Of a stretch of DNA of 64,000 nt, positions 4,510 through 64,000 are shown one piece after another. The DNA lies in the NCBI GenBank assembly GCA_965202585.1, contig OZ241833.1, positions 1,054,001 to 1,118,000 of the forward strand. The letters are read 5' to 3'. The notes under the pieces were generated by a model, which was given only the letters and a program-made list of their open reading frames with translations, did no database searches and was not told the origin of the DNA. Numbering within the stretch: the first letter of the stretch is position 1; each line of letters opens with the position of its first letter. This DNA comes from Thalia democratica (Eukaryota). The translations under genes and the position numbers were made by a program.

Positions 4510-4642
4510 TGTTGATTCAATTCAGCTAGACTTTATCACAAATAAATATATCTTTCATTGTTGAGTTAATTCACAAACTAATTACAAGAATGATAAAGTC
4601 TGTAATACAAAACATAATTAAAACTAGGTAAATACTTATACA
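3726..4642 (-). mobile_element. Truncated LTR-retrotransposon (Ty3/Gypsy-like) 5' fragment inserted in satellite A
   Basis: About 0.92 kb of non-satellite sequence. The satellite stops at ...CATAGAATCT (3725) and resumes at TGGTGTAG (4643). The minus strand carries a frameshifted gag-like reading. There is no TSD, protease or RT. The right junction is uncertain by about 40 bp. Confidence 0.7.
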
Positions 4643-7600: not shown

Positions 7601-10600
7601 TTAACTTTTAAAAGTGATAACTCTATTTTTTCTAGTTGCAAGTAGCTGAAAATTTTTAGAAAATGTCTCAGAGCGCCTCAGATTTCTCAGAGTACAGTCT
7701 AAACGAAAGACGATGACTGCAATAAAAACTTAATTTTAGAAATATCAAATTATTTTAAGAAAGTTTTAAGTTTTTTGTTGCGTTTTTTGTTTTATTTATA
7801 CTTGATTATGGAGTTACTTTTAAAGATGTTTTGCCGTTTTCCAACACTATAATTATTAAATTAACGTCTAAATGTAATAACTTTGTTATTTCTAGTTTCA
7901 TGTAGCTAAAAATTATTGGAAAAAAATCTTTTAGAGACTCAACTTTATCAAAAACCTGTCGAACAGGCCGAGTAATGCTACATTGAAAATATAATTGTAA
8001 AAATTTAAAATCAATTTAAGAAAGGTATAAGTGTTTTGGTGCGTTTTAAGTTTCATTCCTACTTGAAAATGGTTCAATTATTAAAAAAATATTTGTCGTT
8101 TATTAATAAAATTTACTAAGATAACTTCTAAAATCGATAATATTGTTTTTCTAGTTGCAGTTAGATGATTAATATCAGAAAATTTCTAATATAGTCTCAG
8201 CTTTATCAAAGCCCGAGCTAAAATGACTTTATTGCAAAAATAATTGTAAAAAATTAAATTTATTTAAGAAAGATTTAATTGTTTTGTTGTGTTTTCAGTT
8301 TTATTCATACTTGATTATGGGGTAACTTTTATAATTGTTAGGTCGTTTATCAACGCTTTATTTACCAAGATAACTTTTAAAAGTGATAACTTTGTTTTTT
8401 CTATTTACATTTAGCTGAAAAATATTACAAAATATCTCATAGAGTATCAGCTTTATCAAAGCCCAGTCAAACCAGATAAGAATGACTGCATTGCAATATA
8501 ATTATAAAATTATTAAATTATTTTAAGAAAGTTTTAAGTGTTTTGTTGTCTTTTAAATTTTATTCATACTTGATTATGGGGTAAATTATATAATTGTTAG
8601 GTCGTTTATCAACGATTTATTTACAAATATAACTTCTAAATGTGATAAATTTGATTTTTCCTAGTCGCATGAAGTTTGAAATTATTGAATAATTCTTTGA
8701 GATTCTCAACTTTATCAAAGTCCAGTCGAACTGGCCGAGGATGACTGTAATAAAAAGATAGTTGTAAAAATCTATAATCAATTTAAGAAGTAGTGTATTT
8801 GTAATGTATTGTAAGTAGTAAATTTGTAGTGCATTGTTCTGTTCTTAATTTTATTGATGTTTCATGGTGGGTGAACAATTGAAATTGTTTAATCTTATAT
8901 TAGCACTATATTTACTTAGTCAACTTTTAAAAGTGATAACTCTATTTTTTCTAGTTGAAAGTAGCTGAAAATTTTTAGAAAATGTCTCAGAGCGCCTCAG
9001 ATTTCTCAGAGTACAGTCTAAATGGACGAGAATGACTGCATAGAAAACTTAATTATAGAAATATTAATTTATTTTAAGAAAGTTTTAAGTCTTTTGTTGC
9101 GTATTTAGTTTTATTTATACTTGATTATGGAGTTACGTTTAAAATTGTTTTGTCGTTTTCTAACACTATAATTATTAAGATAACGTCTAAATGTGATAAC
9201 TTTGTTATTTCTAGTTGAATGTAGCTAAAAAATTGTTGGAAAAAAAAGGTTGTAAGTCTCAACTTTATTAAAAACCTTTCGAACCGGCCGAGTAATGCTA
9301 CATTGGATAGATAATTGTAAAAATTTAAAATCTATTTAAGAAAGGTTTAAGTGTTTTGGTGCGTTTTAAATTTTATTCATATTTAAATATACGAAACTTT
9401 TAAAATTATTTAGTTGTTTATCAACATTTTTTTTACAAAGATAAGTTCTATAAGGTATAACTTTGTTTTTTTTAGTCGTATTAAATGAAAACTATTAGAA
9501 AATGTTTTAGTTAGCCTCAGATTTCTCATAGTACAGTTGAACTTGCCGAAGATGACTCTTAAAAAAATATAATTGTAGAAATATAAAATTATTTTAAAAA
9601 ACATTTAAGTGTGTTGTTGTGTTTTAAATATTAATCATACTTGATTTTACGTAAATTTTCAAGTTTTTAGTCGTTTTTCAACGCTTTAAATACAAATATA
9701 ACCTCTAAAAGTAAAAAAAAATATTCTTGAGTTAGATTTAGATGGAAGTTATTAGAAAATATCTCATTGAGTTTCAGCTTTGTCAAAGTTTAGTCAAATC
9801 AGCGAAGAATGACTGCATTGCTTAGATGATTGTAAAAATATATAGTTACTTTAAGAAATGGTGTAAAGTTTTAATCCTTTTTTAGCTTTATTCATACTTG
9901 ATCATGGGGTAACTTTTATAATTGATAGTTCAAATATCAATACTTAAATTACTAAAATAACAAAGTGATAACTTTGTTTTTTCTATTTACAATAAGCTTA
10001 AAATAATTAGAAAATATCTCAGAGAGTATCAGCTTTACCAAAGCCAAGTCTAACCAGCTAAGAATGACTGCATTGCAAAAATAATTGTAGAAATATAAAA
10101 TTGTTTTAACAAAGAGTTAAAAGTTTTGTTGCGTTTTTAGTTTTATTCATACTTGATTGCGGAGTAACTTTTATAAATGTTAGGTCGTTTATCGACATTT
10201 AATTACTAAGATAACTTCTAAAAGTTATCACCTTTGTTTTTTCTAGTCGCTTGCAGTTTGAAATTAGTAAAAAAAGTCTCCGAGAGTCTCAGCTTTATGA
10301 AAGTCCAGTCGAACCAGCCAAGAATGATTGCATAAAAAAGATAATTGTAGAAATATATATATATTTTATTTTAAGAAAGTTTTAAGTGTCTAGTTCAGTT
10401 TTTAGTTTTATTTATAGTTGATTATGGGGTAACTTTTATATTAATAGGTCGTTTACCAACGCTTTATTACTTTATTACTTTAAAAAGTGATAAATTTGAT
10501 TTTCTAGTAGCTTTTAGCTGAAAGTTTTTAGAAAATATCTAATATAGTGTCAGCTCTATCAAAGCCTAATCGAACTGGTCAAGGATTACTTTAATATAAG

Positions 10601-11810
10601 ATAACGGTAGAAAAACACTTTCATTTAAGGAAAATTGAGTGTTTTGTTGTGTTTTTGGTTTTGTTCATACTTGATTATGGGCTAAATTTTTTTATATGTT
10701 AGGTCGTTTATTAACGCTTCATTTACCAAGATAACTTCCAAAAGTGATAACTTAGTTTTTCTATTTACATTTAGCTAAAAATTATTAGAAAATATCGCAG
10801 AGAGTGTCAGGTTTATCAAAACCCAGTTGAACCAGCTAAGAATGACTGCTTTGCAAATTAATTGTAGAAATGTTAAATTATTTTTAATAAGTTTTAAGTT
10901 TTTTGTTTTGTTTTTATTTTAATTTATATCTTATTATGTAGTAACTTTAAAAATTGCTTGGCCCTTATCAACGCTTTATTTACCAAGATAACTTCTAAAA
11001 ATAAATTTGATTTTTTCTAGTCGCCTGCAGTTTGAAAACATTTGATAATTCTTTCAGAGTCTTAACTTTATCAAAGTCAAGTCGAAACAGCCGAGGGTAA
11101 CTACAATAAAAAGACAGTTGTAAAATTACAATATCTTTAAATAAAGAGTCTTTTGTTTTATATTTTTTTTTAGTTTTATTAATATTTGATTGTGAAAAAA
11201 AATTAGAAATTATTTAGTCATTTATGAACAACAAATTCACTAAGATAGTTTATTTAATTGAAAACTTTGTTTTTTCTAGTTGCATTATTTAAATATTATT
11301 AGAAAATGTTTTAAAGAGCCTCAGCTTTCTCACAGTACAGTCAAAATGGCCGAGTTGATTGTAATGAAAAAATAATTGTAGAACCATAAAATTATTTTAA
11401 GAAACGTTTGAGTGTTTTTTTGTGCATTTCGTTCTATTCATACTTATTTATGGGGTAACTATTATAACTGTTAGGTCGTTTATCAACACTTTATTTAGCA
11501 AGATAAATTCTTAACTTAAAAAAATTGATTTTCTAGTTGCATTAGGCTGAAAATTATTAGAAAATATCTCATAGAGTCACAGCTTTATCAAAGCCAAGTC
11601 GAACCAGCTAAATATGACTGCATTGCAAAGTAATTGTAGAGATATACATTTATTTTAGGAAAGATTTAAGTGTTTTGATATGTTTTAAATTTTATTTACA
11701 CTTGATTATGGGGTAATTTTTATAATTGTTAGGTCGTTTATCAAAGCTTTATTTACCAAGATAACTTCTAAAAGTGATAACTTTTTTATATCTGTTTATA
11801 TTTAGCTAAA

Positions 11811-14800
11811 ATTGTAGAACATTGAAGCAGGCAACAAAAAATTAGAACTGATAACAGTAAAATGAGTTTTTGATCACCGAGAACTTAAGAGCGTCTTCAT
11901 TGTAGGATAACAAGGCACACAACAAACCAGCAGAGCTGATAACAGTAAAATGAATTTTCGATCACGAAGAACTTAACAGCGATTTCATTGTAGAACATTA
12001 AAGCGGGCAACAAAACATTAAAACTGAAGAAGTAAAAGAAATTTTTGATCACCAAGTACTTAACATCGATTTTTTGCAGGATTACTAGGCGGGAAACAAA
12101 CAAGCAGAACTGATTAGAGTGAAAAAAATTTTAAATCATCAAGAACTTAACAGTGTCTTTGTTGGATGCCATGGCAAGCTACAAACCAGCAGAACTTATA
12201 ACAGTGAAGAGAATTTTTAATCACCAACAACCTAACAACGACTTAATTGTAGGATACCAAGGCGGGCAACAAACCAAGAGAACTGATAACAATGATAGGA
12301 ATTTAAGATCTCTGAGTCCTTAACAGCGACTTCATTGTAGGATATCAAGGGGGGAATAAACCAAGAGAACTGATAACAATGATAGGAATTTAAGATCACT
12401 AAGTTTTTAACAGCGTCTTCATTTTAGGATACCGAGGCGGGCAATAAACCAGGAGAACTGAAAACAATGTAAGGAGTTTTAGATCACTAGATCCTTAAAA
12501 ACAACCTAATTGTAAGAGACTAAGGTGGGCAACCAAAGGGAGAACTTATAACATTAAGAGAAATTTTTGATCACCAAAAACGTAAAAACAACTTTGTTGT
12601 AGGACACCAAGGTGGGCAACAAACCAGCAGAACTGATAACAGTAAAAGGAATTTTTGATCATCAAGAACTTAACAACGACTTCATTGTGAGATACCAAAT
12701 TTGGCAACAAACCAACAAAACTGACAACAGTAAAAGAAATTTCTGATCACCAACAACTTAACAGCGATTTCATTGTGGGATACCAAGGCGGACTATAAAC
12801 CTGCAGAACTGATATCAGTGAAAGGAATTTTTGATCACGAAGAACTTAACAACAACTTCATTGTAGAATACCAATGCGGGCAAAAAACCAGCAGAACTGA
12901 TAACAGTAAAAGAATTTTTGATCACCAAGAACTAAACAGCGATTTCATTGTGGGACACAAAGGCGGGCAACAAAACAGCAGAACTGATAACAGTGAAAGG
13001 AATTTTTGATCACCAAGAACTTAACAGCGTCTTCATTGTGGGATACCATGGTGAGCAACAAACCAGCAGAACTGATAACGGTAAAAGTAATTTTTGATCA
13101 CCAAGAAGTAAACAGCGATTTCGTTGTGGGATACCAAGGTGGGCAAAAAACCAGCAGAACTGATAACAGTAAAAGAAATTTTTGATCACCAAAAACTTAT
13201 AAATAACTTCATTGTAGAATACCAATGCGGGCAAAAACCAGCAGAACTTATAACATTAAAAGATATTTTGAACATTAAGAACTTTACAGCGATTTCATTG
13301 TAGGACACCAAGGTCGGCAACAAACCAGCAGAACTAATAACAGTTAAAGATGTTTTGAACACCAAGATCTAAACAGCAACTTCATTGTAGAATACCGAGG
13401 CGGGAAACAAACCAGCAGAACTGTAACAGTGAAAGGATTTATTGATCACCAAAAACTTAACAGCGATTTCATTGTAGGACACCAAAGCGGACAATAAACC
13501 AGCAGAACTGATAACAGTAAAATAAATATTTGGTCACCAAGAACTTAACAGCAACTTCATTGTAGGACACCAAGGCGGACAATAAACCAGCAGAACTGAT
13601 AGCTGTGAAAGGAATTTTTGATGACCGAGAAATTAACAGCGATTTCATTGTAGAACATTAAAGCGGGCAACAAAAGATTAGAACTGATAACAGTGATTGG
13701 AATTTTTGATCAACAAGAACATAACAGCGACTTCATTGTGGGATACCAAGGTTGGCAACAAACCAGCAGAACTGATATCAGTAAAAGGAATTTTTGATCA
13801 CCAAGAACTTAACAGCGATTTCATTGTAGAACATTAAAGCGGGCAACAAAACATTAGAACTGAAAACAGTAAAAGAAATTTTTGATCACCAAGTGCTTAA
13901 CAGCGATTTTTTGCAGGATACAAAGGCGGGAAACAAACCAGCAGAACTGATTAGAGTGAAAAGATTTTACAATCATCAACAACTTAACAGTGTCTTCGTT
14001 GGATGCCAAGGCAAGCTATAAACCAGCAGAACTCATAACAGTGAAGAGAATTTTCGATCAACAACAAAACAGCGACTTCATTGTAGGATACCGAGGCTGG
14101 AAACAAACCACCAGAACTTTTAACAGTGAAATGAATTTTTGATCACCAACAACCTAACAACGACTTAATTGTAGGATACTAAGGAGGGCAACAAACCAGG
14201 AGAACTGATAACAATAATAGGAATTTAAGATCACTAAGTCCTTAACAGCGTCTTCATTGTAGGATACCAAGACGGGCAATAAACCAGGAGAACTGAAAAC
14301 AATGTAAGGAATTTTAGATCACTAGGTCCTGAAAAACAACCTAATTGTAAGATACTAAGGTGGGCAACCAACCAGGAGAACTGATAACATTAAGAGAAAT
14401 TTTTGATCACCAAGAACTTAAAAACAACTTTATTGTAGGACACCAAGGTGGGCAACAAACCAGCAGAACAGATAACAGTAAAAGGAATTTTTGATCATCA
14501 AGAACTTAACAACGACTTCATTGTGGGATACCAAAGTGGGCAACAAACCAGAAGAACTGACAAAAGTAAAAGAAATTTTTGATCACCAACAACTTAACAG
14601 CGATTTCATTGTGAGATACCAAGGTGGACTATAAACCTGCAGAACTGTTATCAGTGAAAGAATTTTTTGATCACCAAGAACTAAACAATAATTTCATTGT
14701 AGGACACCAAGGCGGGCAACAAAACAGCAGAACTTATAACAGTGGAAGGAATTTTTGATCACCAAGAACTTAACAGCAACTTCATTGTGGAACACTGAGG

Positions 14801-17800
14801 CGGGCAACAAACTAGCAGAACTGATAACAGTAAAAGAAATGTTTGATCACCAAGAACTTAACAGCGATTTCATTGTGGGATGCTAAGATGGGCAATAAAC
14901 AAGCAGAACTGATATCAGTAAATTGAATTTTTAATCACCAAGAACTAAACAGCAACTTCATTGTAGAATACCGAGGCGGGAAATAAACCAGCATAACTGT
15001 AACAGTGAAAGGATTTATTGATCACCAAGAACTTAACAGCAACTCCATTGTAGGTTACCAATGCGTGCAAAACACCAACAGAACTGATAACAGTAAAAGA
15101 AATTTTGAACACCAAGAACTTAACAGAAACTTCATTGTAGAATACCAAGGCGGGCTACAAACCAGCAGAACTGATAACAGTAAACGAAATTTTGAACACC
15201 AAGAAATAAACAGCAACTTCATTTTAGAAAACCAAGGCAGGCAACAAAACAGCAGAACTGTAACAGTGAAATGAATTTTAGATCACCAAGAACTTAACAG
15301 CGTCTTTATTGTAGAACACCATGGCGGGCAACAAACTAGCAGTACTGATTACAATGAAAGGAATTTTTGATCATCAAGAACGTAACAGCAACTTCATTAT
15401 AGGACACCAAGGCGGACAACAAACCATTAGAACTGATAACAGTAAATTGAATTTTTAATCACCAAGAACTAAACAGCAACTTCATTGTAGAATATCGAGG
15501 CGGGAAACAAACCAGCAGAACTGTAACAGTGAAATGGTTTATTGATCACTAAGAACTTAACAGCGATTTCATTGTAGGACACCAAAGCGGACAATAAACC
15601 AGCAGAACTGATAACAGTAAAAGAAATTTTTGATCACCAAGAACTTAACAGCAACTTCATTGTAGGACACCATGACGGGCAACAAACTAGCAGTACTGAT
15701 TACAATGAATGGAATTTTTGATCACCAAGAACTTAACAGCAACTTCATTATAGGACACCAAGATGGGCAACAAACCATTAGAACTGATAACAGTAAAAGA
15801 TATTTTGGACACCAAGATCTAAACAGCAACTTCATTGTAGAATACCGAGGCGGGAAACAAACCTGCAGAACTGTAACAGTGAAAGGGTTTATTGATTACT
15901 AAGAACTTAACAGCGATTTCATTGTAGGACACCAAAGCGGACAATAAACCAGCAGAACTTATAAAAGTAAAAGAAATTTTTGATCACCAAGAACTTAACA
16001 GCAACTTCATAGTAGGACACCATGGCGGGCAACTAACCAGCAGAACTGATAACAGTGAAAGATCTTTGTACATTAAGAACTAAACAGCAACTTCATTGTA
16101 GAATACCGAGGCAGGAAACAAACCAGCAGAACTGAAACAGTGAAAGGGTTTATTGATCACCAAGAACTTAACAGCGATTTCATTGTAGGACACCAAAGCA
16201 GACAATAAAGCAGCAGAACTGATAACAGTAAAGGAAATTTTTGATCATTAAGAACTTAACAGCAACTTCATTGTAGGACACCAAGGCGGACAATAAACCA
16301 GCAGAACTGATAACAGTGAAAGGAATTTTTGATGACCGAAAACTTAACAGCGATTTAAATGTAGAACATTAAAGCGGGCAACAAATCATTAGATCTGATA
16401 ACAGTGAATCGAATTTTTGATCACCAAGAACATAACAGCGACTTCATTGTAAGATACCATTCAGGCAAAAAACCAGCAGATCTGATAACAATAAAGAAAT
16501 TTTGATCACAAAGAACTTAATTGCGTCTTCATTGTTGGATACCTATGCGGGCAAAAAACCAGCAGAACTAATAACAGTAAAGATATTTTGAACACCAAAA
16601 ACTTAATACGACTTCATTGTAGAATACCGAGGTGGGCAACAAACCAGCAGAACTGTAACAGTGAAAGGTTTATTGATCACCAAAAACTTAACAACAACTT
16701 CATTGTAGGACACCAAGGCGGGAAACAAACCAGCAGAACTGATAACAGTAAAATAAATTTTTGATCACCAAGAACTTAACAGCAACTTCATTGTAGGACA
16801 CCAAGGCGGACAAAAAAACCAGCAGAAGTGATAACTGTGAAAGGAATTTTAAATCATCAAGAACTTAACAGTGTCTCCGTTGGATGCCAAGGCAAGCTAC
16901 AAACCAGCAGAACTCATAACTTTGAAGAGATTTTTCGAAAAAAAACAAAACAGCAACTTCATTGTAGGATACCGAGGCGAGAAACAAAGCTGCAGAACTT
17001 ATAACAGTGAAATAAATTTTTGATCACCAACAACTTAACAACGACTTAATTGTAGGATACCAAGGCGGGCAACAAACCAGGAGAACTGATAAAAATGATA
17101 GGAATTTAAGATCACTGAGTCCTTAACAGCGACTTCATTGTAGGATACCAAGGGGGGAACAAATCAGCAGAACTGATAACAATGAAAGGAATTTTAGATC
17201 ACTAGGTCCTTGAAAATAACCTAATTGTAAGTTACTAAGTTGGGCAACCAACCAGGAGAACTGATAACAGTGAAAGGAATTTTTAATCATCAAGAACTTA
17301 ACAGCGATTTCATTGTCGGATACAAAGGTGGACTACAAACCTGCAGAACTGATATCAGTGAAAGAAATTTTTGATCACCAAGAACTTAACAACAACATCA
17401 TTGTAAGATACTAAGGTGGGCAACCAACCAGCAGAACTGACAACAGTAAAAGAAATTTTTGATCACCAAGAACTTAACAGCGATTTTATTGTCGGATACC
17501 AAGGTGGACAATAAACGAGCGGAACTCATAACAGTGAAAGGAAACTTTGATCACCAAGAACTTAACAGCAATTTCATTGTAGGACATTAAAGAGGGCTAC
17601 AAACCAGCAGAACTGATAATAGTAAATTGAATTTTAAGTCACTAAGAAGTTAACATCAATTTCACTGTAGGACACCAAGGCGGGCAACAAACTAGCAGAA
17701 CTGATAGCATAGAAATGAGTTTTTTGATTACCAAGAACTTAAATAGCGATTTCATTGTAGGACACCAAGGCGGGCAACAAACTAGCAGAACTGATAACAG

Positions 17801-20800
17801 TGAAAGGAATTTTTGATCAGCAAGAACTTAACAGCGATTTCATTGTAGGATACCAAGGCGGGGAACAAACCAGCAGAACAGATATCAATAAAGGAATTTT
17901 TGATTACCAAGAAATAAACAGCAATTTCATTGTAGGACACCAAGGCGGGCAACAAAACAGCAGAACTGATACAAGTGAAAGGAATTTTTGATCATCAAGA
18001 ACTTAACAGCAACTTCATTGTATGACATTAAAGCGGGCTACAAACCAGCAGAACTTATAACAGTGAAAGAAATCTTTGATCAAAAAGAACTTAACTGCGT
18101 CTTCATTGTGGGAAACCAAGGTTGGCAACAAACCAGCAGAATTGATATAAGTAAAATGAATTTTAGATCACCAAGAACTTAATAACGAATTCATTGTAGA
18201 ATACCAAGGCGGGTAATGAGCTAGAAAAACTGATAACAATAAAAGAAATTTTTTTAATCACCAAGAACTTAACAACGACTTCATTGTAGGACAACAAGGC
18301 GTGCAAAAAACTAGCAGAACTGATAACAGTGAAAGGAATTTTTGATCACCATGAACTTACGAGCGATTTCATTGTAGGATACCAAGGTGAACAACAAACC
18401 AGCAGAACTGATAACAGTAAAAGATATTTTGAACACTAAGAACTTAACAGCGTCTTCATTGTAGTATACCAAGGCAGACAACAAACCAGCAGAACTGATA
18501 ACAGTAAAATAAATTTTTTATCAATAAAAACTTAACAGCGATTTCATTGTAGAACATTAAAGCGGGCAACAAAAAATTAGAACTGAGAACAGAAAAAGAA
18601 ATTTTTGATCACCAAGAACTTATGAGCGATTTCATTGTAGAACATTAGAGCGGGCAACAAAACATTAGAACTGAAGACAGTAAAAGAAATTTTTGATCAC
18701 CACGTACTTAACAGCGATTTTTTGCAAAACACCAAGGCGGGAAACAAACCAGCAGAACTGATTAGAGTGAAAAAAAAATTTTGATCATCAAGAACTTAAC
18801 AGTGTCTTCGTTGGATGCCGTGGCAAGCTATAAGCCAGCAGAACTGATAACAGTTAAATGATTTTTCGATCAACAAAAAAATATCGACTTCATTGTAGCA
18901 TACATAGGCGGGAAACAAACCAGTAGAACTTATAGCAGTGAAATGAATTTTTGATCATTAACAACTTAACAACGACTTTATTGTAGGATACCAAGGCGGG
19001 CAACAAACCAAGAGAACTGATAACAATGATAGAAATTTAAGATTACTGACTCCTTAACAGCGACTTCATTGTAGGATACCAAGGGGGGAATAAACCAGCA
19101 GAACTGATAACAATGAAAGGAATTTTAAATCACTTGGTCCTTAATAACAACCTAATTGTAAGATACTAAGGTGGGCAACCAACAAGCTGAACTAATAACA
19201 CTAAGAGAAATTTTCGATCACCAAGAACTTAACAGCGACTTCATTGTAGGATACCAAGACGGGCAACAAAACAGCAGAACTGATACCAGTGAAAGGAATT
19301 TTTGATCAACGAGAACTTAACAGCAACTTCATTGTATGACATTAAAGCGGGCTACAAACCAGCAGAACTAATAACAGTAACATAATTTTGATCACCAAGA
19401 ACTTAACAGCGATTTTATTGTAGGACAACAAGGCGTGCAAAAAACTAGCAGAACTGATAACAGTAAAAGGAATTTTTGATCACCATGAACTTAAGAGCGA
19501 TTTCATTGTAGAATACCAAGGTGAACAACAAACCAGCTGAACTGATAAGAGTAAAATAAATTTTGATCACCAAGAACTTAACAGCAACTTTATTGTAGAA
19601 TACCAAGGCGGGCTACAAACCAGCAGAACTGATAACAGTAAAAGATATTTTGAACACCAAGAACTTAACAGCGATTTAATTGTAGAACATTAAAGCGGGC
19701 AACAAAACATTAGAACTGAAAACAGTAAAAGAAATTTTTGATCACCAAGTACTTAACAGCGATTTTTTACAGGATTCCAAGGCGGAAAACAAACCAGCAG
19801 AACTGATTAGAGTGAAAAAAAAATTTGATCATCAAGAACTTAACAGTGTCTTCGTTGGATGCCTAGGCAAGCTACAAACCAGCAGAAATGATAACAGTGG
19901 AATGAATTTTCGATCAACAACAACTTAACTACGACTTTATTGTAGGATACCAAGGCGGTCAACAAACCAAGAGAACTGATAACAATGATAGGAATTTAAG
20001 ATCACTGAGTCCTTAACAGCGACTTCATTGTAGGATACCAAGGGGGGGAATAAACCAGCAGAACTGATAACAATGAAAGGAATTTTAGATCACTAGGTCC
20101 TTAAAAACAACCTAATTTTAAGATACTAAGATGGGCAACCATCCAGCAGAATTGATAACACTAACAGAAATTTTTGATCACCAAGAACTTAAAAACAACT
20201 TTATTGTAGGACACCAAGGTGGGCAACAAACCAGCAGAACTGATAACAGTGAAAGGAATTTTTGATCATCAAGAATTTAACAACGACTTCATTGTGGGAT
20301 ACAAAAGTGGGCAACAAACCAGCAGAACTGACAACAGTAAATTAAATTTTTGATCACCAAGAACTTTACAGCGATTTCATTGTGGGATACCAAGGTGTAC
20401 TACAAACCTGCAGAACTGATATCAGTGAAAGGAATTTATGATTATTAAGAACTTAACAACAACTTCATTGTATGATACCAATGCGGGCATAAAAAGAGCA
20501 GAACTGATAACAGTAAAAGAAATTTTTGATCACCAAGAACTAAACAGCAAGTTCAATGTAGGACACCAAGGCGGGCAACAAAACAGCAGAACTGATAACA
20601 GTGAAACGAATTTTTGAACACCAACAACTAAACAGCGATTTCGTTGTTGGATACCAAATTGGGCAACAAACCAGCAGAACTGATAACAGTAAAAGAAATT
20701 TTTGATCACCAAAGAACTTAACAACAACTTCATTGTAGGACACCAAGGCGGGCAACAAACTAGCAGAACTGATAACAGTGAAAAGAATTTTTGATCAGCA

Positions 20801-23800: not shown

Positions 23801-24235
23801 AAGGCGGGCAACATACCAACAGAACTGATAACAGTGAAAGGAATTTTTGATCAGCAAGAACTTAACAGCGAGTTCATTGTAGGATACCAAGGCGGGCAAC
23901 ATACCAACAGAACTGATATCAGTGAAGGAATTTTTGATTACCAAGAAATAAACAGCAACTTTATTGTAGGACACCAAGGCGGGCAACAAAACAGCAGAAC
24001 TGATACCAGTGAAAGGAATTTTTGATCACCAAGAACTTAAGTACAACTTAATTGTAGGATACCAAGGCAGTTAATGAGCTAGCATAACTGATAACAATAA
24101 AAAAATTTTTTGATCACCAAGAACTTAACAACGACTTAATTGTAGGATAGCAATGCGGGCTACAAACCTGCAGAACTGTAACAGTGAAATGAATTTTTCA
24201 TCACTCTGAACTTAACAGCGTCTTCATTGTAGGAT
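11811..24235 (+). repeat. Satellite family B, array 1 (~88 bp monomers, about 140 copies)
   Basis: The consensus AACCAGCAGAACTGATAACAGTAAAAGAAATTTTTGATCACCAAGAACTTAACAGCGATTTCATTGTAGGACACCAAGGCGGGCAACA is 88 bp (period checked 17761->17849). The + strand is A-rich, about 41% A versus 19% T in the consensus. Confidence 0.97.
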
Positions 24236-24732
24236 CCGGCCGAATATTGCCATTTTTGGCTAATATCTGGATCCGGCCGGATCCTAAATTAAAAAAAAGT
24301 CCGGATCCGGTTTTGGCCGGATTATAATTTGAAAAAAAAAAAGTCCGGATCCGGGTCCGGCCGAATCCTAATTTGAAAAAAAAGTCCGGATCCGGGTCCG
24401 TCCGGACCCGCAATTGTGAGTCCAGAACAAAACTCTTAATATCTAATATTAAATTTTTTTGAAATTACTTTTGTTTGCTCATATCTTAACTATGAGCTTA
24501 ACTATTCTCAGTTGATCCGAAGATATCTATAGAAAACTGAATAAGAAAAATTTAAGGTTATTTATAAGGTATGTGCAACCAAACACGGGTAATCGGCGAG
24601 AGTATAAATTTAGTACCAATTGAAACTTATAAACTATTCAAATGAAGTTTATGATATCAAATTAACAGTTCAAAGTACTTACAATTTTCTTGAGATGCAT
24701 TGACGTTTTTACTCATATCTCCTGAATGCGAG
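24232..24732. mobile_element. Truncated DNA-transposon-end-like fragment with ATCCGG/CCGGATCCGG subterminal repeats (hAT-like), at the B->A boundary
   Basis: A CpG-dense block (24232-24411) has several CCGGATCCGG palindromes in three ~42-bp units (TAATTTGAAAAAAAAGTCCGGATCCGG), followed by about 320 bp of unique AT-rich sequence. It joins satellite B through shared GGAT, and satellite A resumes near 24733. No TIR pair or TSD is visible, so the superfamily is inferred. Confidence 0.55.
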
Positions 24733-53300: not shown

Positions 53301-55922
53301 TCACTAGGTCCTTAAAAACAACCTTATTGTAAAATACTAAGGTGGGCAACCAACCAGGAGAACTGATAACATTAAGAGAAATTTTTGATCACCAACAACT
53401 TAAAAAAAAACTTTATTGTAGGACATTAAGGTGGGCAACAAACCAGCAGAACAGATAACAGTGAAAGGAATTTTTGATCACCAAGAACTTAACAGCGATT
53501 TCATTGTGGGATACCAAGGTGGACTATAAACCTGCAGAACTGATATCAGTGAAAAAAATTTTTGATCACCAAGAACTAAACAGCAACTTCATTGTAGAAT
53601 ACCGAGGCGGGAAATGAACCAGCATAACTGTAACAGTGAAAGGATTTATTGATCACCGAGAACTTAACAGCAACTTCATTGTGGGATTTTAAAGTGGGCA
53701 ACAAACCAGCAGAACTGACAAAAGTAAAAGAAATTTTTGATCACCAACAACTTAACAGCGATTTCATTGTGGGATACCAAGGTGGACTATAAACCTGCAG
53801 AAATGATATCAGTGAAAAAAATTTTTGATCACCAAGAACTAAACAATAACTTCATTGTGGGATACTAAGATGGGCAACAAACCAGCAGAACTGATATCAG
53901 TTCATTGAACTTTTAATAACCAAGAACTAAACAGCTGTTTCATTGTAGAATACCGAGGCGCGAAATGAACCAGCATAACTGTAACAGTGAAAAGATTTAT
54001 TGATCACCAAGAACTTAACAGCGATTTCATTGTAGGTTACCAATGCGGGCAAATCACCAGCAGAACTGATATTAGTAAAAGTAATTTTTGATCACCAACA
54101 ACTAAACAGCGATTTCGTTGTGGGATACCAAGGTTGGCAACAAAACAGCAGAACTGATAACAGTAAAAGAAATTTTTGATCACCAAAAACTTAAAAAGGA
54201 CTTCATTGTAGGATACCAATGCAGGCAAAAAACCAGCAGAAATGATTACATTAAAAGATATTTTGAACACCAAGAACTTTACAGCGATTTCATTGTAGGA
54301 CACCAAGGTGGGCAACAAACCAGCAGAACTGATAACAGTGAAAGATATTTTGAACACCAAGAACTAAACAGCAACTTTATTGTAGAATACCAAGGCGGAA
54401 AACTAACCAGCAGAACTGTAACAGTGAAAGGATTTATTGATCACTAAGAACTTAACAGCGATTTCATTGTAGGACACCAAAGCGGACAATAAACCAGCAG
54501 AACTGATAACAGTAAAAGAAATTTTTGATCACCAAGAACTTAACAGCAACTTCATTGTAGGACACCATGGCGGGGAACAAACTAGCAGAACTGATAACAA
54601 TAAAGAAATTTTGATCACGAAGAACTTAATTGCGTCTTCATTGTTAGATACCAATGCGGGCAAAAAACCAGCAGAACTAGTAACAGTAAAGATATTTTGA
54701 ACACAAAAAACTTAAAGACGACTTCATTGTAGAATAACGAGGTGGGCAACAAACCAGCAGAACTGATAACAGTGAAAGATATTTTGAACACAAAGAACTA
54801 AACAGCGACTTCATTGTAGAATACCGAGGCGGGAAACAAACCACCAGAACTGTAACAGTGAAAGGATTTATTGATCACCAAGAACTTAACAGCGTCTTCA
54901 TTGTAGGATACCAAGGCAGACAACAAACCAGCAGAGCTGATAACAGTAAAATAAATTTTTTATCAATAAGAACTTAACAGCGATTTCATTGTAGAACTCT
55001 AAAGCGGGCAACAAAAAATTAGAACTGAAGACAGTAAAAGAAATTTTTGATCACCAAGTACTTAACAGCGATTTTTTGCAGAATACCAAGGCGGGAAACA
55101 AACCAGCAGAACTGATTAGAGTGAAAAAAAAAATTTGATAATCAAGAACTTAACAGTGTCTTCGTTGGATGCCGTAGCAAGCTACAAACTAGCAGAACTG
55201 ATAACAGTGAAATGATTTTTCGATCAACAACAAAATAACGACTTTACTGTAGGATACCGAGGCGGGAACCAAACCAAGAGAACTGATAACAATGATAGAA
55301 ATTTAAGATTACTGACTCCTTAACAGCGACTTCATTGTAGGATACCAAAGGGGGGGGGGGGGATAAACCAGCAGAACTGATAACAATGAAAGGAATTTTA
55401 GATCACTTGGTCCTTAATAACAACCTAATTGTAAGATACTAAGGTGGGCAACCAACCAGCAGAATTGATAACACTAACAGAAATTTTTGATCACTAAGAA
55501 CTTAAAAACAACTTTATTGTAGGTCACCAAGGCGGGCAACAAAACAGCAGAACTGATAACAGTGAAAGGAATTTTAAATCATCAAGAACTTAACAGCGTC
55601 TTCAATGTGGGATACCAAGGTGGGCAACAAACGAGCAGAACTAATAACAGTAAAAGAATTTTTCGATCATCAAGAACTTAACAACGATTTTATTGTGGAA
55701 TACTAAGGTGGGCAACAAACCAGCAGAACTGATATCAGTAAAATGAATTTTTAATGACCAAGAACTTAACAACGACTTTATTGTAGGACACCTAGGCGGA
55801 CAACAAACCAGCAGAAACGATTTCAGTTGATTGAATTTTTTGATTACCAAGAACTTAACAGCGATTTCATCGTAGGATACCAAGGCGGGCAAAAAACTAG
55901 CAGAACTGATAACAGTGAAATA

Positions 55923-56450
55923 AATTTTTGATCAGCACAAACTTAACAGCGATTTCATTGTAGGATACCAAGGCGGGGAACAAACCAGCAGAACTGATAT
56001 CAATGAAGGAATTTTTGATCACCGAGAAATAAACAGCAACTTCATCGTAAGACACCAAAGCGGGCAACAAACAAGCAGAACTGATAACAGTAAAAGATAT
56101 TTTGAACACCAAGAAATAAACAGCAACTTCATTGTAGAACACCAAGGCGGGCACTAAAACAGCAGAACTGTAACAGTGAAACGAATTTTTGATCAGCACA
56201 AACTTAACAGCGATTTCATTGTAGGATACCAAGGCGGGGAACAAACCAGCAGAACTGATATCAATGAAGGAATTTTTGATCACCGAGAAATAAACAGCAA
56301 CTTCATCGTAAGACACCAAAGCGGGCAACAAACAAGCAGAACTGATAACAGTAAAAGATATTTTGAACACCAAGAAATAAACAGCAACTTCATTGTAGAA
56401 CACCAAGGCGGGCACTAAAACAGCAGAACTGTAACAGTGAAACGAATTTT
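55923..56450 (+). repeat. Apparently exact 261-bp tandem duplication (three 87-bp B monomers)
   Basis: AATTTTTGATCAGCACAAAC at 55923 recurs at 56184 (offset 261). The two copies read identically by eye, which produces the 87-aa repeat in the 172-aa minus-strand ORF. Confidence 0.9.
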
Positions 56451-56837
56451 AGGTCCCCAAGAACTTAACAGCGTCTTTATTGTAGGACACCAATGCGAAC
56501 AATAAACCAGCATAACTGATAACAGTGAAAGGAATTTTTGATTACCGAGAACTTAACAGCGATTTCATTGTGGGAAACCAAGGTTGGAAACAAAGCAGCA
56601 GAACTAATATAAGTAAAATGAATTTTAGATCACCAAGAACTTATTAACGACTTCATTGTAGAATACCAAGGCGGGTAATGAGCTAGCAAAACTGATAACA
56701 ATAAAAGAAATTTTTTTAATCACTATGAACTTAACAACGACTTCATTGTAGGATAGCAAGGCGAACAACAAACCTGCAGAACTGTAACAGTGAAATGAAT
56801 TTTTCATCACTCTGAACTTAACAGCGTCTTCATTGTA

Positions 56838-56862
56838 GGATCCGGCCGAATATTGCCATTTT
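56838..56862. mobile_element. 25-bp relic of the ATCCGG element start embedded inside satellite B array 2
   Basis: GGATCCGGCCGAATATTGCCATTTT matches 24232-24256. It is followed by the filler AGAAGAAGAAGATAA, and satellite B then resumes. Confidence 0.85.
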
Positions 56863-59800
56863 AGAAGAAGAAGATAATAGAAGTGAAAGGAATTTTTGAT
56901 CATCGAGAACTTAACAGCATTTTTATTGGAGAAAACCAAGGCGGGAAACAAACAAGCAGAACTGATAACAGTAAAAGAAATTTTTGATCACCGAGAACTT
57001 AACAGCGTCTTCATTGTAGTATACCAAGGCAGACAACAAACCAGCAGAGCTGATAACAGTAAAATGAATTTTTGATCAATAAGAACTTAACAGCGATTTC
57101 ATTGTAGAACATTAAAGCGGGCAACAAAAAATTAGATCTGATAACAGTAAAAGAAATATTTGATCACCAAGAACTCAACAGCGATTTCATCGTAGAACAC
57201 TAAAGCGGGCTACAAATCATCAGAACTGAAAACAGTAAAAGAAATTTTTGATCACCAAGTACTTAACAGCGATTTTTTGCAGGATTACTAGGCGGGAAAC
57301 AAACAAGCAGAACTGATTAGAGTGAAAAAAATTTTAAATCATCAAGAACTTAACAGTGTCTTTGTTGGATGCCATGGCAAGCTACAAACCAGCAGAACTT
57401 ATAACAGTGAAGAGAATTTTTAATCACCAACAACCTAACAACGACTTAATTGTAGGATACCAAGGCGGGCAACAAACCAGCAGAACTGATAACAATAAAA
57501 GATATTTTTGATCACCAAGAACTTAACAGCGATTTCATTGTTGGATACCAAGGTCGACCACAAACCTGCACAATTGATATCAGTAAAAGGAATTTTTGAT
57601 CAACAAGAACTTAACAGCGATTTCATTGTGGGATACCAAGGTGGACTACAAACTTGCATAAACTGATATCAGTAAAAGGAATTTTTGATCACCAAGAACT
57701 TGAAAACAACTTTTTGTGGTCACCAAAGTTGGTAACAAACAAACAGAACTGATAACAGTAAAAGGAAATTTTGATCACCAAGAACTTAACAACGACTTCA
57801 TTGTGAGATACCAAAGTGGGCAACAAACCAGCAGAACTGATAACAGTAAAAGAAATTTTTGATCACCATGAACTTAAACCGATTTCATTGTGGGATACCA
57901 AGGTGGACTACAAACCTGCAAAAACTGATATCAGTAAAAGGAATTTTTGATCAACAAGAACTTAACAACAACTTCATTGTAGGATTCTAAAGCGGGCAAA
58001 AAACCAGCAGAACTGATAACAGTAAACGAAACTTTTCTTCACTAAGAACTTAACAGCGTCTTCATTGTGGGATACTAAGGTGGGCAACAAACCAGCAGAA
58101 CAGATAACAGTGAAAGGAATTTTTTATCACCAAGAACTTAAGTACAACTTAATTGTAGGATACCAAGGCAGGTTAAGAGCTAGCATAACTGATAACAATA
58201 AAAAATTTTTTTGATTACCAAGAACTTAACAACGACTTCATTGTAGGACACCAAGGCAGACAACAAACCAACAAAATTGATAAAAGTTAAAGAAATTTTT
58301 CATCACCGAGAACTTAACAGCATCTTCATTTTAGGATACCAAGGCAGACAACAAACCAGCATAGCTGATAACAGTTAATTGAATTTTTAATCATCAAGAA
58401 CTTAACAACGACTTCATTGTAGGATACCAAGGCGGGCAACAAACCAGCAGAAAAGATAACAGTAAATTGAATTTTTGATCACCAAGAATTTAACAGCGAT
58501 TTCATTGTAGGACATCAAGGCGGGCTACAAACCATAAAAACTTATAGCAGTTAAAGGAATTTTTGATCATCAAGAATTTAACAGCGTCTTAATTGTTGGA
58601 TACTAAAGCCGACAACAAACTAGCAGAACTGATAACAGTAAAAGGAATTTTTGATCACCACGAACTTAAAAACAAACTCATTGTAAGAAACTAAGGTAGG
58701 CAACCAACCAGCAGAACTGAAAACAGTAACAGAATTTTTTGATTACCAAGAACTTAAAAAGACTTCATTGTAGAATAGCAAGACGGGCACAAACCAGCAG
58801 AACTGATAACAATTAAGGGAATTTTTGATCACCGAGAACTTAAAAACAACTTAATTGTAAGAAACTAAGGTGGGCAACAAACCATCAGAACTGATAACAG
58901 TAAAAGATATTTTGATAACCAAGAAATAAACAGCAACTTCGTTGTAGAATACCGAGGCGGGAAATAAACCAGCATAACTATAACAGTGAAACGATTTATT
59001 GATCACCAAGAACTTAACAGCAACTTCATTGTAGGTTACCAATGCGAGCAAAAAACCAGCAGAACTGATAACAGTAAAAGTAATTTTTGATCACCAAGAA
59101 CTAAACAGCGATTTCGTTGTGGGATACCAAGGTGGGCAAAATACCAGCAGAACTGATAACAGTAAAAGAAATTTTGATCACCAAAAATTTTAAAATGACT
59201 TCATTGTTTAATACCGAGGCGGGCAAAAAACCAGCGGAACTGATATCAGTAAAAGAAATTTTGATCACCAAGAAGTTAACAGCAACTTCATTGTAGGACA
59301 CCAAAGCGGACAATAAACCAGCAGAACTGATAACAGTAAAAGAAATTTTTGATCACCAAGAACTTAACAGCAACTTCATTATAAGAAACGAAAGCGGGCA
59401 ACTAACCAGCAGAACTGATAACAGTGAAAGATCTTTGAACACTAATAACTAAACAGCAACTTCATTGTAGAATACCAAGGCGGGAAACAAACCAGCAGAA
59501 CTGATAACAGTAAAAGAAATTTTTGATCACCAAGAACTTAACAGCGATTTCATTGTAGGATACCAAGGCAGACAATAAACCAGCAGAAGTGATAACTGTG
59601 AAAGGAAATTTTTGATCATTAAGAACTTAACAGCAACTTCATTGTAAGACACCAAGGCGGACAATAAACCAGCAGAAGTGATAACTGTGAAAGGAATTTT
59701 AAATCATATCATCAAGAACTTAACATTGTCTTCGTTGGATGCCAAGGCAAGCTACAAACCAGCAGAACTCAAAACATTGAAGAGATTTTTCGATCAACAA

Positions 59801-62800
59801 CAACACAGCGACTTCATTGTAGGATACCGAGGCTGGAAACAAAGCTGCAGAACTTATAACAGTGAAATGAATTTTTGATCACTAACAACTTAACAACGAC
59901 TTAATTGTAGGATACCAAGGCGGGCAACAAACCAGGAGAACTGATAACAATAAAAGGAATTTTAGATCACTAGGTCCTTAAAAACAACCTAATGGTAAAG
60001 ACCAACTATAATTGTAATAAAAAGAATTTTTTGATCACCAAGAACTTAACAGCGATTTCATTGTCGAATACCAAGGTGGACTACAAACCAGCAGAACTGA
60101 TATCAGTGAAAGGAATTTTTGATAACCAAGATTTTAACAACAACTTCATTGTAAGATACCAATTTGGGCGAAATACCAGCAGAACTGGAAACAGTAAAAG
60201 AAATTTTGATGACCAAGAACTAAACAGCAATTTCATTGTAGGACACAAAGGCGGGCAACAGAACAGCAGAACTGATAACAGTGAAAGAAATTTTTGATCG
60301 CCAAGAACTTAATAGTGTCTTCATTTTGGGATACCAAGGTGGGCAACAAACAAGCAGAACTGATAACAGTGAAAGGAAACTTTGATCACCGAGAACTTAA
60401 CAGCGATTTCATTGTAGGACTTTAAAGAGGGCTACAAACAAGCAGAACTGATAACAGTAAATTGAAATTTAATTCACCAAGAAGTTAACATCAATTTCAT
60501 TGTAAGACACCATTGCATGCACTAAACAAGCAGAATTGATAAGAGTAAAAGAAATTTTTGATTACCAAAAACTTGTAAACGACTTCATTGTAGGATACCA
60601 AGGCGGGCAACAAACCAGCAAAACTGATAACAGTGAAAGGAATTTTTGATCACCAAGAACTAAACAGCAACTTCATTGTAGGACACCATGGCGGGCAACA
60701 AACCAGCAGAACTGATAAAAGTAAAAGAAATTTTTATCACCAAGAACTTAACAGCAACTGCATTGTAGGACACCAAGACGGAAAACAAACCGGCAGAACT
60801 GATAACAGCGAAAGAAGTTTTTGATCACCAAGAACATAACAATTAATTCATTGTGGGATACCAAGGCGGGTAACAAACCAGCAGAACTGATAACAGTAAG
60901 AAGAATTTTTAATCAGCAAGAACTTAACAGCGCTTTCATTGTGGGATACCAAGGTGGACAAAAAACAAGCAGAACTGATATCAGTGAAAGGAATATTTCA
61001 TCACTAAGAACTTAACAGCGGTTTCATTGTAGGATACCAAGGTGGGCATTAAACTAGCAGTTTTGGTTATCAAGAAGTTAACAGCGATTTCATTTTGGGA
61101 TACCAAGGTTGACAACAAACTAGCAGAACTGATATCAGTTAAAGGAATTTTTGATCACTTAAAACATTACAATGACATCATTGTAGGACACCAAGACGGG
61201 CAACAAACCAGCAGAACTGATAAAAATAAAATAAACTTTCAATTAACAAGAACTTAACAGCGACTTCATTGTAGGACATTAAAGCGGGCTACAAACTAGC
61301 AGAACTGATAACAGTGAAATGACTTTTTGATCACCAAGAACTTAACAGCGACTTAATTGTAGGACACAAAGGCAAGCAACAAACTAGAAGCACTGATAAC
61401 AGTAAAAGAAATTTTGATCACCAAAAAATAAGCAGCAACTTCATTGTAAAACACCTTGGCGGGTAACGAAACAGCAGAACTGTAACAGTGAAATGAATTT
61501 TTTATCACCAAGAACTTAACAGCGTCTTTACACCAAAGCGGACAATAAACCAGCAGAACTAATAACAGTGAAAGGAATTTTTAATGACCGAGAACTTAAC
61601 AGCGATTTCATTGTAGAACATTAAAACGGGCAACAAAACATTAGAACTGATAACAGTGAATGGAATTTTTGAACACCAAGAACATAACAGCGACTTCATT
61701 TTAAGATACCATACGGGCAACAAACCAGCAGAACTGATAACAGTGAAAGAAATTTTTGATCACGAAGAACTTAACTGTGTCTTCATTGTCGAATACCAAG
61801 GTGGGCAACAAACCAGCGGAACTAATATCAGTGGAGGAATTTTTAATCACCAAGAATTTAATAACGAATTCAATGTAGAACACCAAGGCGGGTAATGAGC
61901 TAACAAAACTGATAACAATAAAAGAAATTTTTTTATCACCAAGAACTTAACAACGACTTCATTGTAGAAAACCAAGGCGGGAAACAAACAAGCAGAACTG
62001 ATAACAGTAAAAGAAATTTTTTATCACCGAGAACTTAACAGTGTCTTCATTGTAGGATACCAAAGCAGACAACAAACCAGCAGAGCTGATAACAGTAAAA
62101 TGAATTTTTGATCAATAAGATTTAACAGCAATTTAGATGTAGAACATTAAAGCGGGCAACAAAACATTAGAACTGAAAACAGTAAAAGAAATTTTTTATC
62201 ACCGAGAACTTAACAGCGATTTTTTGCAGGATACCAAGGCGGGAAACAAACCAGCAGAACTGATTAGAGTGAAATGAATTTTTAATCATCAAGAACTTAA
62301 CAGTGTCTTCGTTGGATGCCAAGGCAAGCTACAAACCAGCAGAACTCATAACAGTGAAATGAATTTTCGATCAAAAAGAAAACAGCGACTTCATTGTAGT
62401 ATACCTAGGCGGAAAACAAACCAGCAGAACTTATAAAAAAGAAATGAATTTTTGATCACCAACAACTTAACAACTACTTAATTGTAGGATACCAAGGCGG
62501 GAAACAAACCAGGAGAACTGATACAATGATAGAAAATTAAGACCACTAAGTCCTTAACAGCGTCTTCATTGTAGGTTACCAAGGCGGGCAATAAACCAGG
62601 AGAACTGAAAACAATGAAAGGAATTTTAGATCACCAAGAACTTAAAAACTACTTTATTGTAGGACACCAAGGTGGGCAAAAAACCAGCAGAACAGATAAC
62701 AGTGAAAGGAATTTTTGATCATCAAGAACTTAACAACGACTTCAATGTAGGATACCAAAGTGGGCAACAGACCAGCAAAACTGACAACAGTAAAAGAAAT

Positions 62801-63801
62801 TTTTGATCACCATGAACTGAACAGCGATTTCATTGTGGGATACCAAGGTCGACTACAAACCTGCAGAACTGATATCAGTGAAAGGAATTTTTGATCACCA
62901 AGAACTTAACATCAACTTCATTGTAGGACACCAAGGCCGACAACAAACCAGCAGAACTGATTTCAGTGAAATGAATTTTTGATCATCAATAACTTAACAG
63001 CGATTTCATTGTAGGATACCAAGACGGGCAACAAACCAGCAGAACTTCTAACAGTAAAATAATTTTTAATGACCAAGAACTTAACAGCGATTTTATTGTA
63101 GGATACCAAGACGGGCAACAAACCAGCAGAACTGATAACAGTAAAAGAATTTTGATCACCAAGAACTTAAAAGCGATTTAATTGTAGGACACCAAGGCGG
63201 GCAACAAACTAGCGGAACTGATAACAGTGAAAGGACTTTTTGATCAGCAAAAACTAAACAGCGAGTTCATTGTAGGATACCAAGGCGGGCAACATACCAA
63301 CAGAACTGATATCAGTGAAGGAATTTTTGATTACCAAGAAATAAACAGCAACTTCATTGTAGGACACCAAGGCGGGCAACAAAACAGCAGAACTGCTACC
63401 AGTGAAAGGAATTTTTGATCACAAAGAACTTAAGTACAACTTAATTGTAGGATACCAAGGCAGGTAATGAGCTAGCATAACTGATAACAATAAAATAATT
63501 TTTTGATCACCAAGAACTTAACAACGACTTAATTGTAGGATAGCAATGCGGGCTACAAACCTGCAGAACTGATAGAAGTAAAAGTATTATTTAATCATCG
63601 AGAACTTAACAGCGATTTCATTGTAAAACATTAAAGCGGGCAACAAAACATTAGAACTGAGAACAGAAAAAGAAATTTTTGATCACTCTGAACTTAACAG
63701 CGTCTTTATTGTAGGACACTAAGGCGGGAAACAAACAAGCAGAACTGATAACAGTAAAATAAATTTTTGATCACCGAGAACTTAACAACGTCTTAATTGT
63801 A

Positions 63802-64000
63802 GGATCCGGCCGAATATTGCCATATTTGGCTAATATCTGGATCCGGCCGAATCCTAATTTGAAAAAAAAGTCCGTATCCGGGTCCGTCCGGACCCGCAAT
63901 TGTGAGTCCAGAACAAAACTCTTAATATCTAATATTCAATTTTTTTGAAATTACTTTTGTTTGCTCATATCTTAACTATGAGCTTAACTATTCTCAGTTG
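63802..64000. mobile_element. Second copy of the ATCCGG transposon-end-like fragment (runs off the window edge)
   Basis: It has the same GTAGGAT|CCGGCCGAATATTGCC junction as 24232. Bases 63897-64000 match 24411-24514 with one substitution. It lacks 84 bp (two ~42-bp subrepeats) relative to copy 1. Confidence 0.85.

Follow-up and report, generated by a model that had tools for sequence, protein, structure and literature searches.

A directly repeated composite of two unrelated satellite arrays and a spacer in Thalia democratica, probably duplicated by unequal exchange

Work on the human T2T assembly has described composite units that combine several repeat types and are arrayed by unequal crossing-over (10.1101/2021.07.12.451456). 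In Drosophila, the Rsp and 1.688 satellite loci carry variant monomers at their array ends and undergo turnover at their centers (Khost et al. 2017, PMC5411766). Here we examine a 64,000-nucleotide stretch of Thalia democratica DNA (contig OZ241833.1, positions 1,054,001 to 1,118,000; hereafter the window) that combines features of both. Like the human composite repeats and macrosatellites (Hoyt et al., 10.1101/2021.07.12.451456), it brings at least three repeat types into one unit (satellite A of 259 bp, satellite B of 88 bp, and a 41-bp minisatellite, plus a unique spacer), and its units lie head to tail, an arrangement that in the human case is attributed to unequal crossing-over; here, however, only two units of ~35 kb are visible, built mostly of satellite arrays rather than transposon fragments. 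It shares with the Drosophila loci (PMC5411766) the end variants, central turnover, transposon interruptions, and higher-order structure from recent rearrangement, but in this locus the duplication took in two satellites that are unrelated to each other, along with their exact junctions. Single-satellite higher-order repeats such as alpha satellite also show ordered variant monomers and a long period, and the left A array described below has a 5-monomer order of its own. The present locus differs from those systems in that its 35-kb period takes in non-satellite DNA as well as two monomer families that are unrelated to each other, and in that its interiors lack colinearity at high identity. 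The closest mechanistic parallel is tandem segmental duplication by NAHR, which likewise features direct orientation, adjacency, breakpoints in homologous repeats, and a scarless identity step. Because the flanking repeats are satellite monomers in this case, the crossover can be placed only within about 130 bp. As a composite macro-repeat the locus belongs to a known kind, and growth of this sort is ordinary for satellite-rich DNA. A literature search with monomer and junction strings and with "259 bp" and "88 bp" satellites returned nothing matching these sequences.

TRF and an nhmmer map show satellites A and B alternating A-B-A-B on one strand, in agreement with what an earlier note on this DNA had described. 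Coordinates are those of the window, and the features lie on the forward (+) strand, with no strand assigned to the transposon insertion discussed at the end. The left A array (1-11821, interrupted at 3729-4649) is followed by B array 1 (11822-24235, 142 monomers), a non-satellite spacer, E (24236-24737), a second A array (24738-46432, with a 3.1-kb insertion at 32301-35393), B array 2 (46433-63805, 196 monomers), and a second full copy of E (63806-64000) that runs into the end of the window. The visible units number two, both in the same orientation, one of them full and the other truncated where the window stops. The window contains no runs of N and no reverse-strand self-matches. Local alignment of the A and B consensus sequences scores 16, where shuffled sequences average 15.9; this is not significant, so homology between A and B was rejected and we treat the two as unrelated.

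The two A arrays differ in their interiors and resemble each other at their right edges. Monomer clustering shows that the monomers of the left array are divergent and follow a higher-order pattern of five monomers (1.3 kb), "abfde"; self-BLAST reveals an internal duplication of ~6.8 kb (891-2555 versus 7716-9378 at 93%). Its last ~9 monomers, from 9351 onward, are "edge" variants common to unit 2. The second array begins with a homogeneous core of a single monomer type (24738-43383; mean pairwise identity 81%) that carries an internal duplication of 11.4-12.1 kb. This core is divided from the edge-type monomers of unit 2 (43384-46432; a g h a a b i a j c a) by an out-of-register scar at 43384-43439, where model position 81 is joined to ~205. 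The earlier note's observation that rare variant monomers are colinear on either side holds: unit 1 ends in the type string ...g h a b i a j c a and unit 2 in g h a a b i a j c a, and reciprocal-best monomer pairs near the junction are 94-99% identical.

The A-to-B boundary is duplicated with the same breakpoint, as had been claimed. An exact 28-mer spanning it occurs at 11801 (11801-11828, break at 11810/11811) and 46412 (46412-46439, break at 46421/46422), where none is expected by chance; A ends at model position 153 of 251. The B-to-E boundary is likewise copied, at 24227 and 63797, but the note's count of two is wrong, since the 25-mer (again with no chance occurrence expected) is also found at 56833. 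The three breaks fall at 24235/24236, 56841, and 63805/63806. Paired junction flanks differ by 2.4-4.0%, compared with ~20% between random monomers, which indicates that the junctions were copied and not formed by independent expansions, as the note had argued. The units are offset by 34,611-34,615 bp at the A-to-B junction and by 39.6 kb at the B-to-E junction, a 5-kb gap accounted for by a recent internal duplication in B array 2.

That duplication spans 4.4-5.2 kb at 1.9-4.5% divergence and explains why B array 2 is 5 kb longer than B array 1. B array 2 comprises three super-units of ~5-7 kb (46433-~51710, ~51710-56862, and 56863-63805). At the second of the boundaries between them, 22 bp left over from the start of E (56841-56862) form the third B-to-E junction; at the sister boundary near 51710, this relic has been lost through an in-register deletion of ~95 bp. 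The start and end of B array 1 are colinear with those of B array 2, while its interior is rearranged and includes a "B-end then B-start" boundary near 18100-18700. About 9 kb of this interior has no partner in B array 2 better than 85-93%.

Spacer E opens with a 41-bp GC-rich palindromic minisatellite (24232-24423) of five units, which form direct-repeat families D1-D3 spaced 37-44 bp apart; each unit begins with a GGATCCGGCCGAAT-like sequence and contains CCGGATCCGG. It continues as a unique AT-rich spacer of ~315 bp (24424-24737) that reaches to the next A array. The second E copy has three minisatellite units, and its remainder is 97.6% identical to 24349-24514. Neither A nor B matches the unique part significantly, and its derivation from an inverted or degenerate monomer of either was rejected (z = 2.3 and 2.9, neither exceeding the shuffle maxima). 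The "ATCCGG" fragment, previously taken for a transposon end, is instead the first unit of the minisatellite.

How much of the block was copied can be read from the identity profile. Close colinearity is confined to 10130-~14400 versus 44745-~49000 and to ~23500-24514 versus ~62900-64000, that is, to ~4.3 kb around the A-to-B junction and at least 1 kb around the B-to-spacer junction. The proposal that a block of 35-40 kb was copied is thus borne out in that A edge, B, and spacer form a direct-orientation unit, but not in the sense of close colinearity along its whole length. Divergence between units is 3.0% in the A edge (50/1688), 4.0% at the start of B (52/1297), 2.7% at the end of B (12/439), and 2.4% in E (4/166). 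Four of the preserved blocks thus lie close together at 2.4-4.0%, and a fifth (206 bp) stands at 6.8%; a chi-square test for equal divergence is marginal (p = 0.03) because of this 206-bp block, which adjoins a replaced patch. The B interiors, by contrast, are 7-15% diverged between units and rearranged, so divergence is not uniform over the whole duplicated unit, and either later turnover or an older layer is needed.

The left limit of the close copy lies within A. Identity between units 1 and 2 is ~80-89% to the left of 9995-10130 and ~97% to the right, a step that occurs within ~130 bp, in register and without an indel or register shift. Difference positions number 28 in 9868-9994, 10 in 10032-10129, and 18 in the next ~770 bp. 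From this profile and these positions we infer a crossover at 9995-10130 on the unit-1 side and 44610-44745 on the unit-2 side; to the right of ~44745, unit 2 A is a recent copy of 10130-11821. The scar at 43383/43384 was considered as the duplication junction and rejected, since the high-identity tract begins ~1.2 kb to its right, at the in-register step.

Taken together, these results make it probable that the locus arose as a direct tandem segmental duplication within satellite-rich DNA by unequal homologous exchange, with no need for transposition. The copies are adjacent and in the same orientation, their internal junctions are identical, and the breakpoint lies in register inside homologous repeats, where it is marked by a change in identity. 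The starting order would have been A (left array), B, spacer E, and A (core plus a few edge-type monomers). Similar A monomers on both sides of B and E could have paired out of alignment, and an in-register crossover between them would have placed a second copy of the last ~6.5 A monomers, B, E, and what follows ~34.6 kb downstream. Within the arrays, unequal exchange and gene conversion would then have driven the B interiors apart, B array 2 presumably gaining one ~5-kb super-unit and the minisatellite perhaps contracting from five units to three. What lies to the left of each unit is different (5-mer higher-order A for unit 1, homogeneous core A for unit 2), as it should be if the duplication had unit 1 as its source and did not take in the DNA to its left. 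The 22-bp E relic, together with "g h a" monomers that are ~85% identical and present on both sides, suggests at least one earlier event of this type. Three points count against tandem duplication. A whole-unit copy of 3% age should leave ~97% partners in the interior of B array 1; to explain their absence, the interior must have turned over or been converted quickly, or have exchanged with further units outside the window. The marginal outcome of the chi-square test for equal divergence is the second point. In addition, the prediction is only half seen, as the right end of unit 2, with its E-to-A junction and core A copy, falls beyond the window.

Among the mechanisms that the earlier note had listed, large unequal crossover fits best, given the in-register step in A and the similar divergence of four of the five blocks. 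A reading from the same mechanism family, unequal exchange and concerted evolution of a composite macrosatellite, would make the macro-repeat older (~10-15%), perhaps with more units outside the window, and the ~3% tracts mosaics left by recent exchange or long-tract gene conversion. In agreement with this, rough colinearity at 7-15% divergence is seen in the B interiors and in the three shared A monomers farthest to the left, and the E relic together with the B-end/B-start boundaries inside both B arrays points to earlier rounds. We nevertheless regard it as unlikely, because the tracts at 10130-14400 and ~23500-24514+ have nearly equal divergence, for which one event is simpler, and because no third unit appears to the left, where the 35-kb periodicity does not continue within the window. 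Side-by-side assembly of two haplotypes, or of mis-joined reads of one locus, would also yield paired copies in a satellite region, where assembly errors are common, and ~3% divergence is within the allelic range of very heterozygous marine animals. Such an artefact is improbable here: the sequence is free of gaps, the copies stand 18.6 kb apart with a different A subtype between them and dissimilar left flanks, and B array 2 has an internal duplication and an E relic of its own.

Two further explanations were considered. Rolling-circle or extrachromosomal-circle amplification, with a circle of ~35 kb that comprised A edge, B, E, and core A being reinserted, would give head-to-tail copies in one orientation, and the out-of-register A-to-A join at 43383/43384 could be read as the circle junction. 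Yet the copied tract begins at the step near 44610-44745 rather than at that scar, only two units are visible, and nothing requires a circular intermediate, so this origin is very improbable. In the other explanation the satellites would be the cargo of a giant mobile element, of Helitron-like or another type, with the ATCCGG piece as its terminus. It draws on the A/TCCGG junction and a GC-rich hairpin (GGGTCCG/CGGACCC) ~160 bp inside. These bear a loose likeness to the general features of Helitron ends. The supposed end is, however, the opening unit of the 41-bp minisatellite, and no CTRR-type 3' end can be read after the hairpin. E has no inverted partner and no target-site duplication, and no copy within the window besides those described. 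Past E comes A, and B does not resume. The locus therefore shows neither the termini nor the resumption of host sequence with a target-site duplication that would mark a transposon, Helitron, or giant element. An 18-mer from E gave 24 matches in bacterial-type metagenome contigs, all chance hits of 18-21 bp and most in GC-rich (53-67%) contigs. With the left flanks of the two units differing as well, a satellite-laden giant element is scarcely credible.

The locus is a clean base-level example of nested satellite growth, in which 88- and 259-bp monomers are layered into higher-order patterns of 1.3-1.8 kb, internal duplications of 4-12 kb, and a composite unit of ~35 kb. Array ends keep the history and interiors erase it. 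The layers are datable at about 2%, 3%, 6-7%, and 12-15% divergence, and the crossover interval is mapped. It is possible, if doubtful, that the two units belong to a multi-copy macrosatellite of 35-40 kb, a "satellite of satellites" with two long unrelated satellite arrays and a palindromic minisatellite per unit. Such a structure would evolve by exchange between units, its junctions staying similar while its interiors turn over, and might mark a centromeric or other specialized chromosome domain.

The locus points to no new mechanism, mobile element, or function. Rfam and tRNA scans of it gave no match, nor did a protein search with a 172-aa ORF through the B array, which sought the satellite in other assemblies. 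It is without detectable coding or RNA function and is best read as heterochromatin-type repeat DNA. The 921-bp insertion in the left A array (3729-4649) was identified only through relatives, Pfam searches with its broken ORF pieces giving no direct match. The insertion at 32301-35393 in the core A array carries a 13-bp terminal inverted repeat, CAGGGGTCGGCAA, and is flanked on both sides by an 8-bp target-site duplication, CTTTAATT, the combination of short inverted repeats and 8-bp duplication that defines the hAT superfamily. It contains no ORF of 90 aa or more and, because a transposase is absent, is classed as a non-autonomous hAT-like DNA transposon. The A register runs on across it with an overlap of ~9 positions, and its insertion into the core array is a later event.

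Tandem repeats on one strand fill nearly the whole window, which contains neither runs of N nor reverse-strand self-matches. Satellite A, with a 259-bp monomer and 117 model hits, covers positions 1–11821 and 24738–46432; satellite B, with an 88-bp monomer and 341 hits, covers 11822–24235 (B1) and 46433–63805 (B2). A 501-bp non-satellite spacer (E) follows each B array (24236–24737, and from 63806 until the window ends). Local alignment of the two consensus sequences scores 16 against a mean of 15.9 for shuffles, so A and B are unrelated, and composition sets the arrays apart, with ~25–27% G+C in A and ~36% in B, where adenine strongly exceeds thymine. Monomer-to-monomer identity is typically 76–81%. 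When the A monomers are clustered, the series leading up to B1 reads ...a b f d g h a b i a j c a and the one leading up to B2 reads a g h a a b i a j c a; the 18.6 kb of core A between E and the edge of the second unit consists of one homogeneous monomer type. The left A array (1–9350) follows a 5-monomer (~1.3 kb) higher-order pattern, a b f d e, and also contains a ~6.8-kb duplication (891–2555 versus 7716–9378, 5.9% divergence; 3–821 versus 6208–7051, ~90% identical).

The earlier note had proposed that both satellites and an "ATCCGG" piece were copied together as a macro-repeat, with each junction present twice. The duplicated junctions are real, far above chance, and were rightly spotted: a 28-mer across A→B occurs exactly twice in the window (11801 and 46412), neither it nor the B→E 25-mer appears in dinucleotide shuffles, and the flanks are close copies. 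The count holds for A→B but not for B→E, whose 25-mer occurs at 24227 and 63797 and a third time at 56833. Copying as a unit is likewise borne out at the junction flanks, but near-identity is confined to a few kilobases at the array ends. In 100-bp steps, 10130–11930 is 90–100% identical to 44744–46540, and 12422–13720 is 93–99% identical to 47034–48330. Over the final ~440 bp of B preceding E, the ends at 24235 and 63805 are 97–98% identical once two additional B monomers in the copy at 63805 are taken into account, and the E copies are 97.6% identical over 166 comparable bp.

Between the two copies of A edge, B, and E (units 1 and 2), divergence is 3.0% at the A edge (50/1688), 4.0% at the B start (52/1297), 2.7% at the B end (12/439), and 2.4% in E (4/166), and this similarity fits joint copying of all four in one event. 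Another preserved block, the fifth, spans 206 bp (11822–12027) and is 6.8% diverged (14/206), and with it the test of equal divergence across preserved blocks becomes marginal (p = 0.03). It adjoins a ~400-bp patch of ~4.5 B monomers (12028–12421 versus 46640–47033) with 21% divergence in a tract whose identity is otherwise ~96%; the patch looks like a local replacement via conversion or unequal exchange.

Leftward of A→B, identity stays at ~97% as far as ~10130 in unit 1 and ~44745 in unit 2, then drops to 80–89% within ~130 bp, with no gap and an unchanged register. Differences number 28 in 9868–9994, 10 in 10032–10129, and 18 over the following ~770 bp; the three A monomers farther left are still mutual best matches at 85–89%. 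Judged from sequence, this in-register step is characteristic of an unequal crossover in which the A monomers on either side of B and E were similar without being identical. Such monomers would pair and exchange unequally, so that unit 2 would retain the old right-hand A sequence to the left of the exchange point and be a fresh copy of unit 1 to its right. At 34,611–34,615 bp, the offset gives the unit length. Nothing before unit 2 corresponds to the left flank of unit 1, with its 5-monomer higher-order A and 6.8-kb duplication, as would be the case were unit 1 the original. Unit 2 also carries an additional core-type A monomer (44165–44490; 92% to monomers at 36036–36101), absent from unit 1, immediately left of the inferred crossover interval. 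Farther left, an out-of-register join at 43383/43384 (model position 81 to ~205, at most 1 bp of microhomology) divides homogeneous core A from the variant monomers adjoining B; the first ~65 bp after it match best at 2729 (94%). Because the exchange point is 1.2 kb farther right, we read this join as an older scar rather than the junction of this duplication; it may have arisen by an earlier deletion or as the junction of an earlier duplication.

B2 exceeds B1 by 5 kb and contains a recent internal duplication (seen, for example, in 48577–49100 versus 52950–53473, 1.9% divergence; 51745–52260 versus 56912–57427, 4.5%), which is why the two junction offsets differ. Rare B-end monomers (TAATGAGCTAG-type) occur at 18213, 24071, 51600, 56675, 61892, and 63464, with a weaker match (two mismatches) at 58172, and those inside the arrays are followed by B-start-type monomers. 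These boundaries suggest two super-units of ~6 kb in B1 and three in B2. The boundary at 56841–56862 retains 22 bp of E; its sister near 51710, at ~95% identity, is missing ~95 bp, this relic among them, and the B1 boundary near 18300 is without the relic as well. This pattern suggests that B end and E start were copied into the array earlier and mostly deleted since, probably before or around the large duplication, and that the locus has seen more than one such event.

A single recent duplication via unequal exchange within satellite DNA is the explanation we consider probable, and it is an ordinary one. All tested features match a tandem segmental duplication by non-allelic homologous recombination, except uniform divergence. 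As defined for the complete human genome, composite repeats or macrosatellites have units of at least three repeat types arrayed by unequal crossing-over (10.1101/2021.07.12.451456); this locus has such a composition, and two units are visible in the window. The ~9-kb interior of B1 fits less well, its best B2 matches reaching 85–93% in roughly retained order. Either exchange and conversion among monomers quickly overwrote the interior, as reported for other satellites whose variants persist at array ends (PMC5411766), or the macro-repeat is older, has further units, and owes its 3% tracts to recent exchange between them. We regard the older mosaic as unlikely; both belong to one mechanism family.

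An assembly artefact is improbable, since the units have different left flanks and private changes and the sequence has no gaps, and amplification through a circle, which no feature of the window requires, is very improbable. The tests within the window came out against a giant mobile element, making it extremely improbable, and transposon readings in general found no support, the locus lacking the transposon features tested. The "ATCCGG" piece, previously taken as a transposon end, is instead a minisatellite unit. E opens with ~41-bp G+C-rich repeats, five at 24232–24423 (~190 bp) versus three at 63802–63920, each with a GGATCCGGCCGAAT-like start and an internal palindrome, CCGGATCCGG. The remaining ~315 bp are unique and A+T-rich, and neither strand is significantly similar to A or B. 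The window holds no inverted partner or additional copy of E, and B does not restart beyond it. An E 18-mer gave only chance matches among metagenome contigs. On inspection, the A|TC start and hairpin resemble a Helitron terminus, but the 3′ end motif fails.

G+C-rich, CpG-rich sequence is limited in this window to the minisatellite and the ends of a non-autonomous, 3,093-bp hAT-like element inserted cleanly in core A (32301–35393). The termini of this element form a 13-bp inverted repeat (CAGGGGTCGGCAA) and are bounded by an 8-bp target-site duplication (CTTTAATT); subterminal GCGGGCC-type motifs are present, and ORFs of at least 90 aa are absent. Copies of an 11.4–12.1-kb core A duplication (25081–27208 versus 36449–39343, ~93% identity) flank it, one per side. 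A 921-bp minus-strand coding fragment (3729–4649) with ~8 stops in one frame interrupts the left A array, where ~80 bp of an A monomer are missing and no target duplication is present. A 73-aa piece of it has 61 relatives; in the long ones, reverse transcriptase, RNase H, and integrase follow one another in Ty3/gypsy order, and the matching region lies upstream, on the gag side. By these similarities, the fragment is classed as a decayed gag-side piece of a Ty3/gypsy-type LTR retroelement. Hinting at an A+T-rich marine eukaryote as host, its DNA relatives (76–79% identity) lie on contigs with 28–35% G+C, several of which come from Tara Oceans or other metagenomes labelled as marine.
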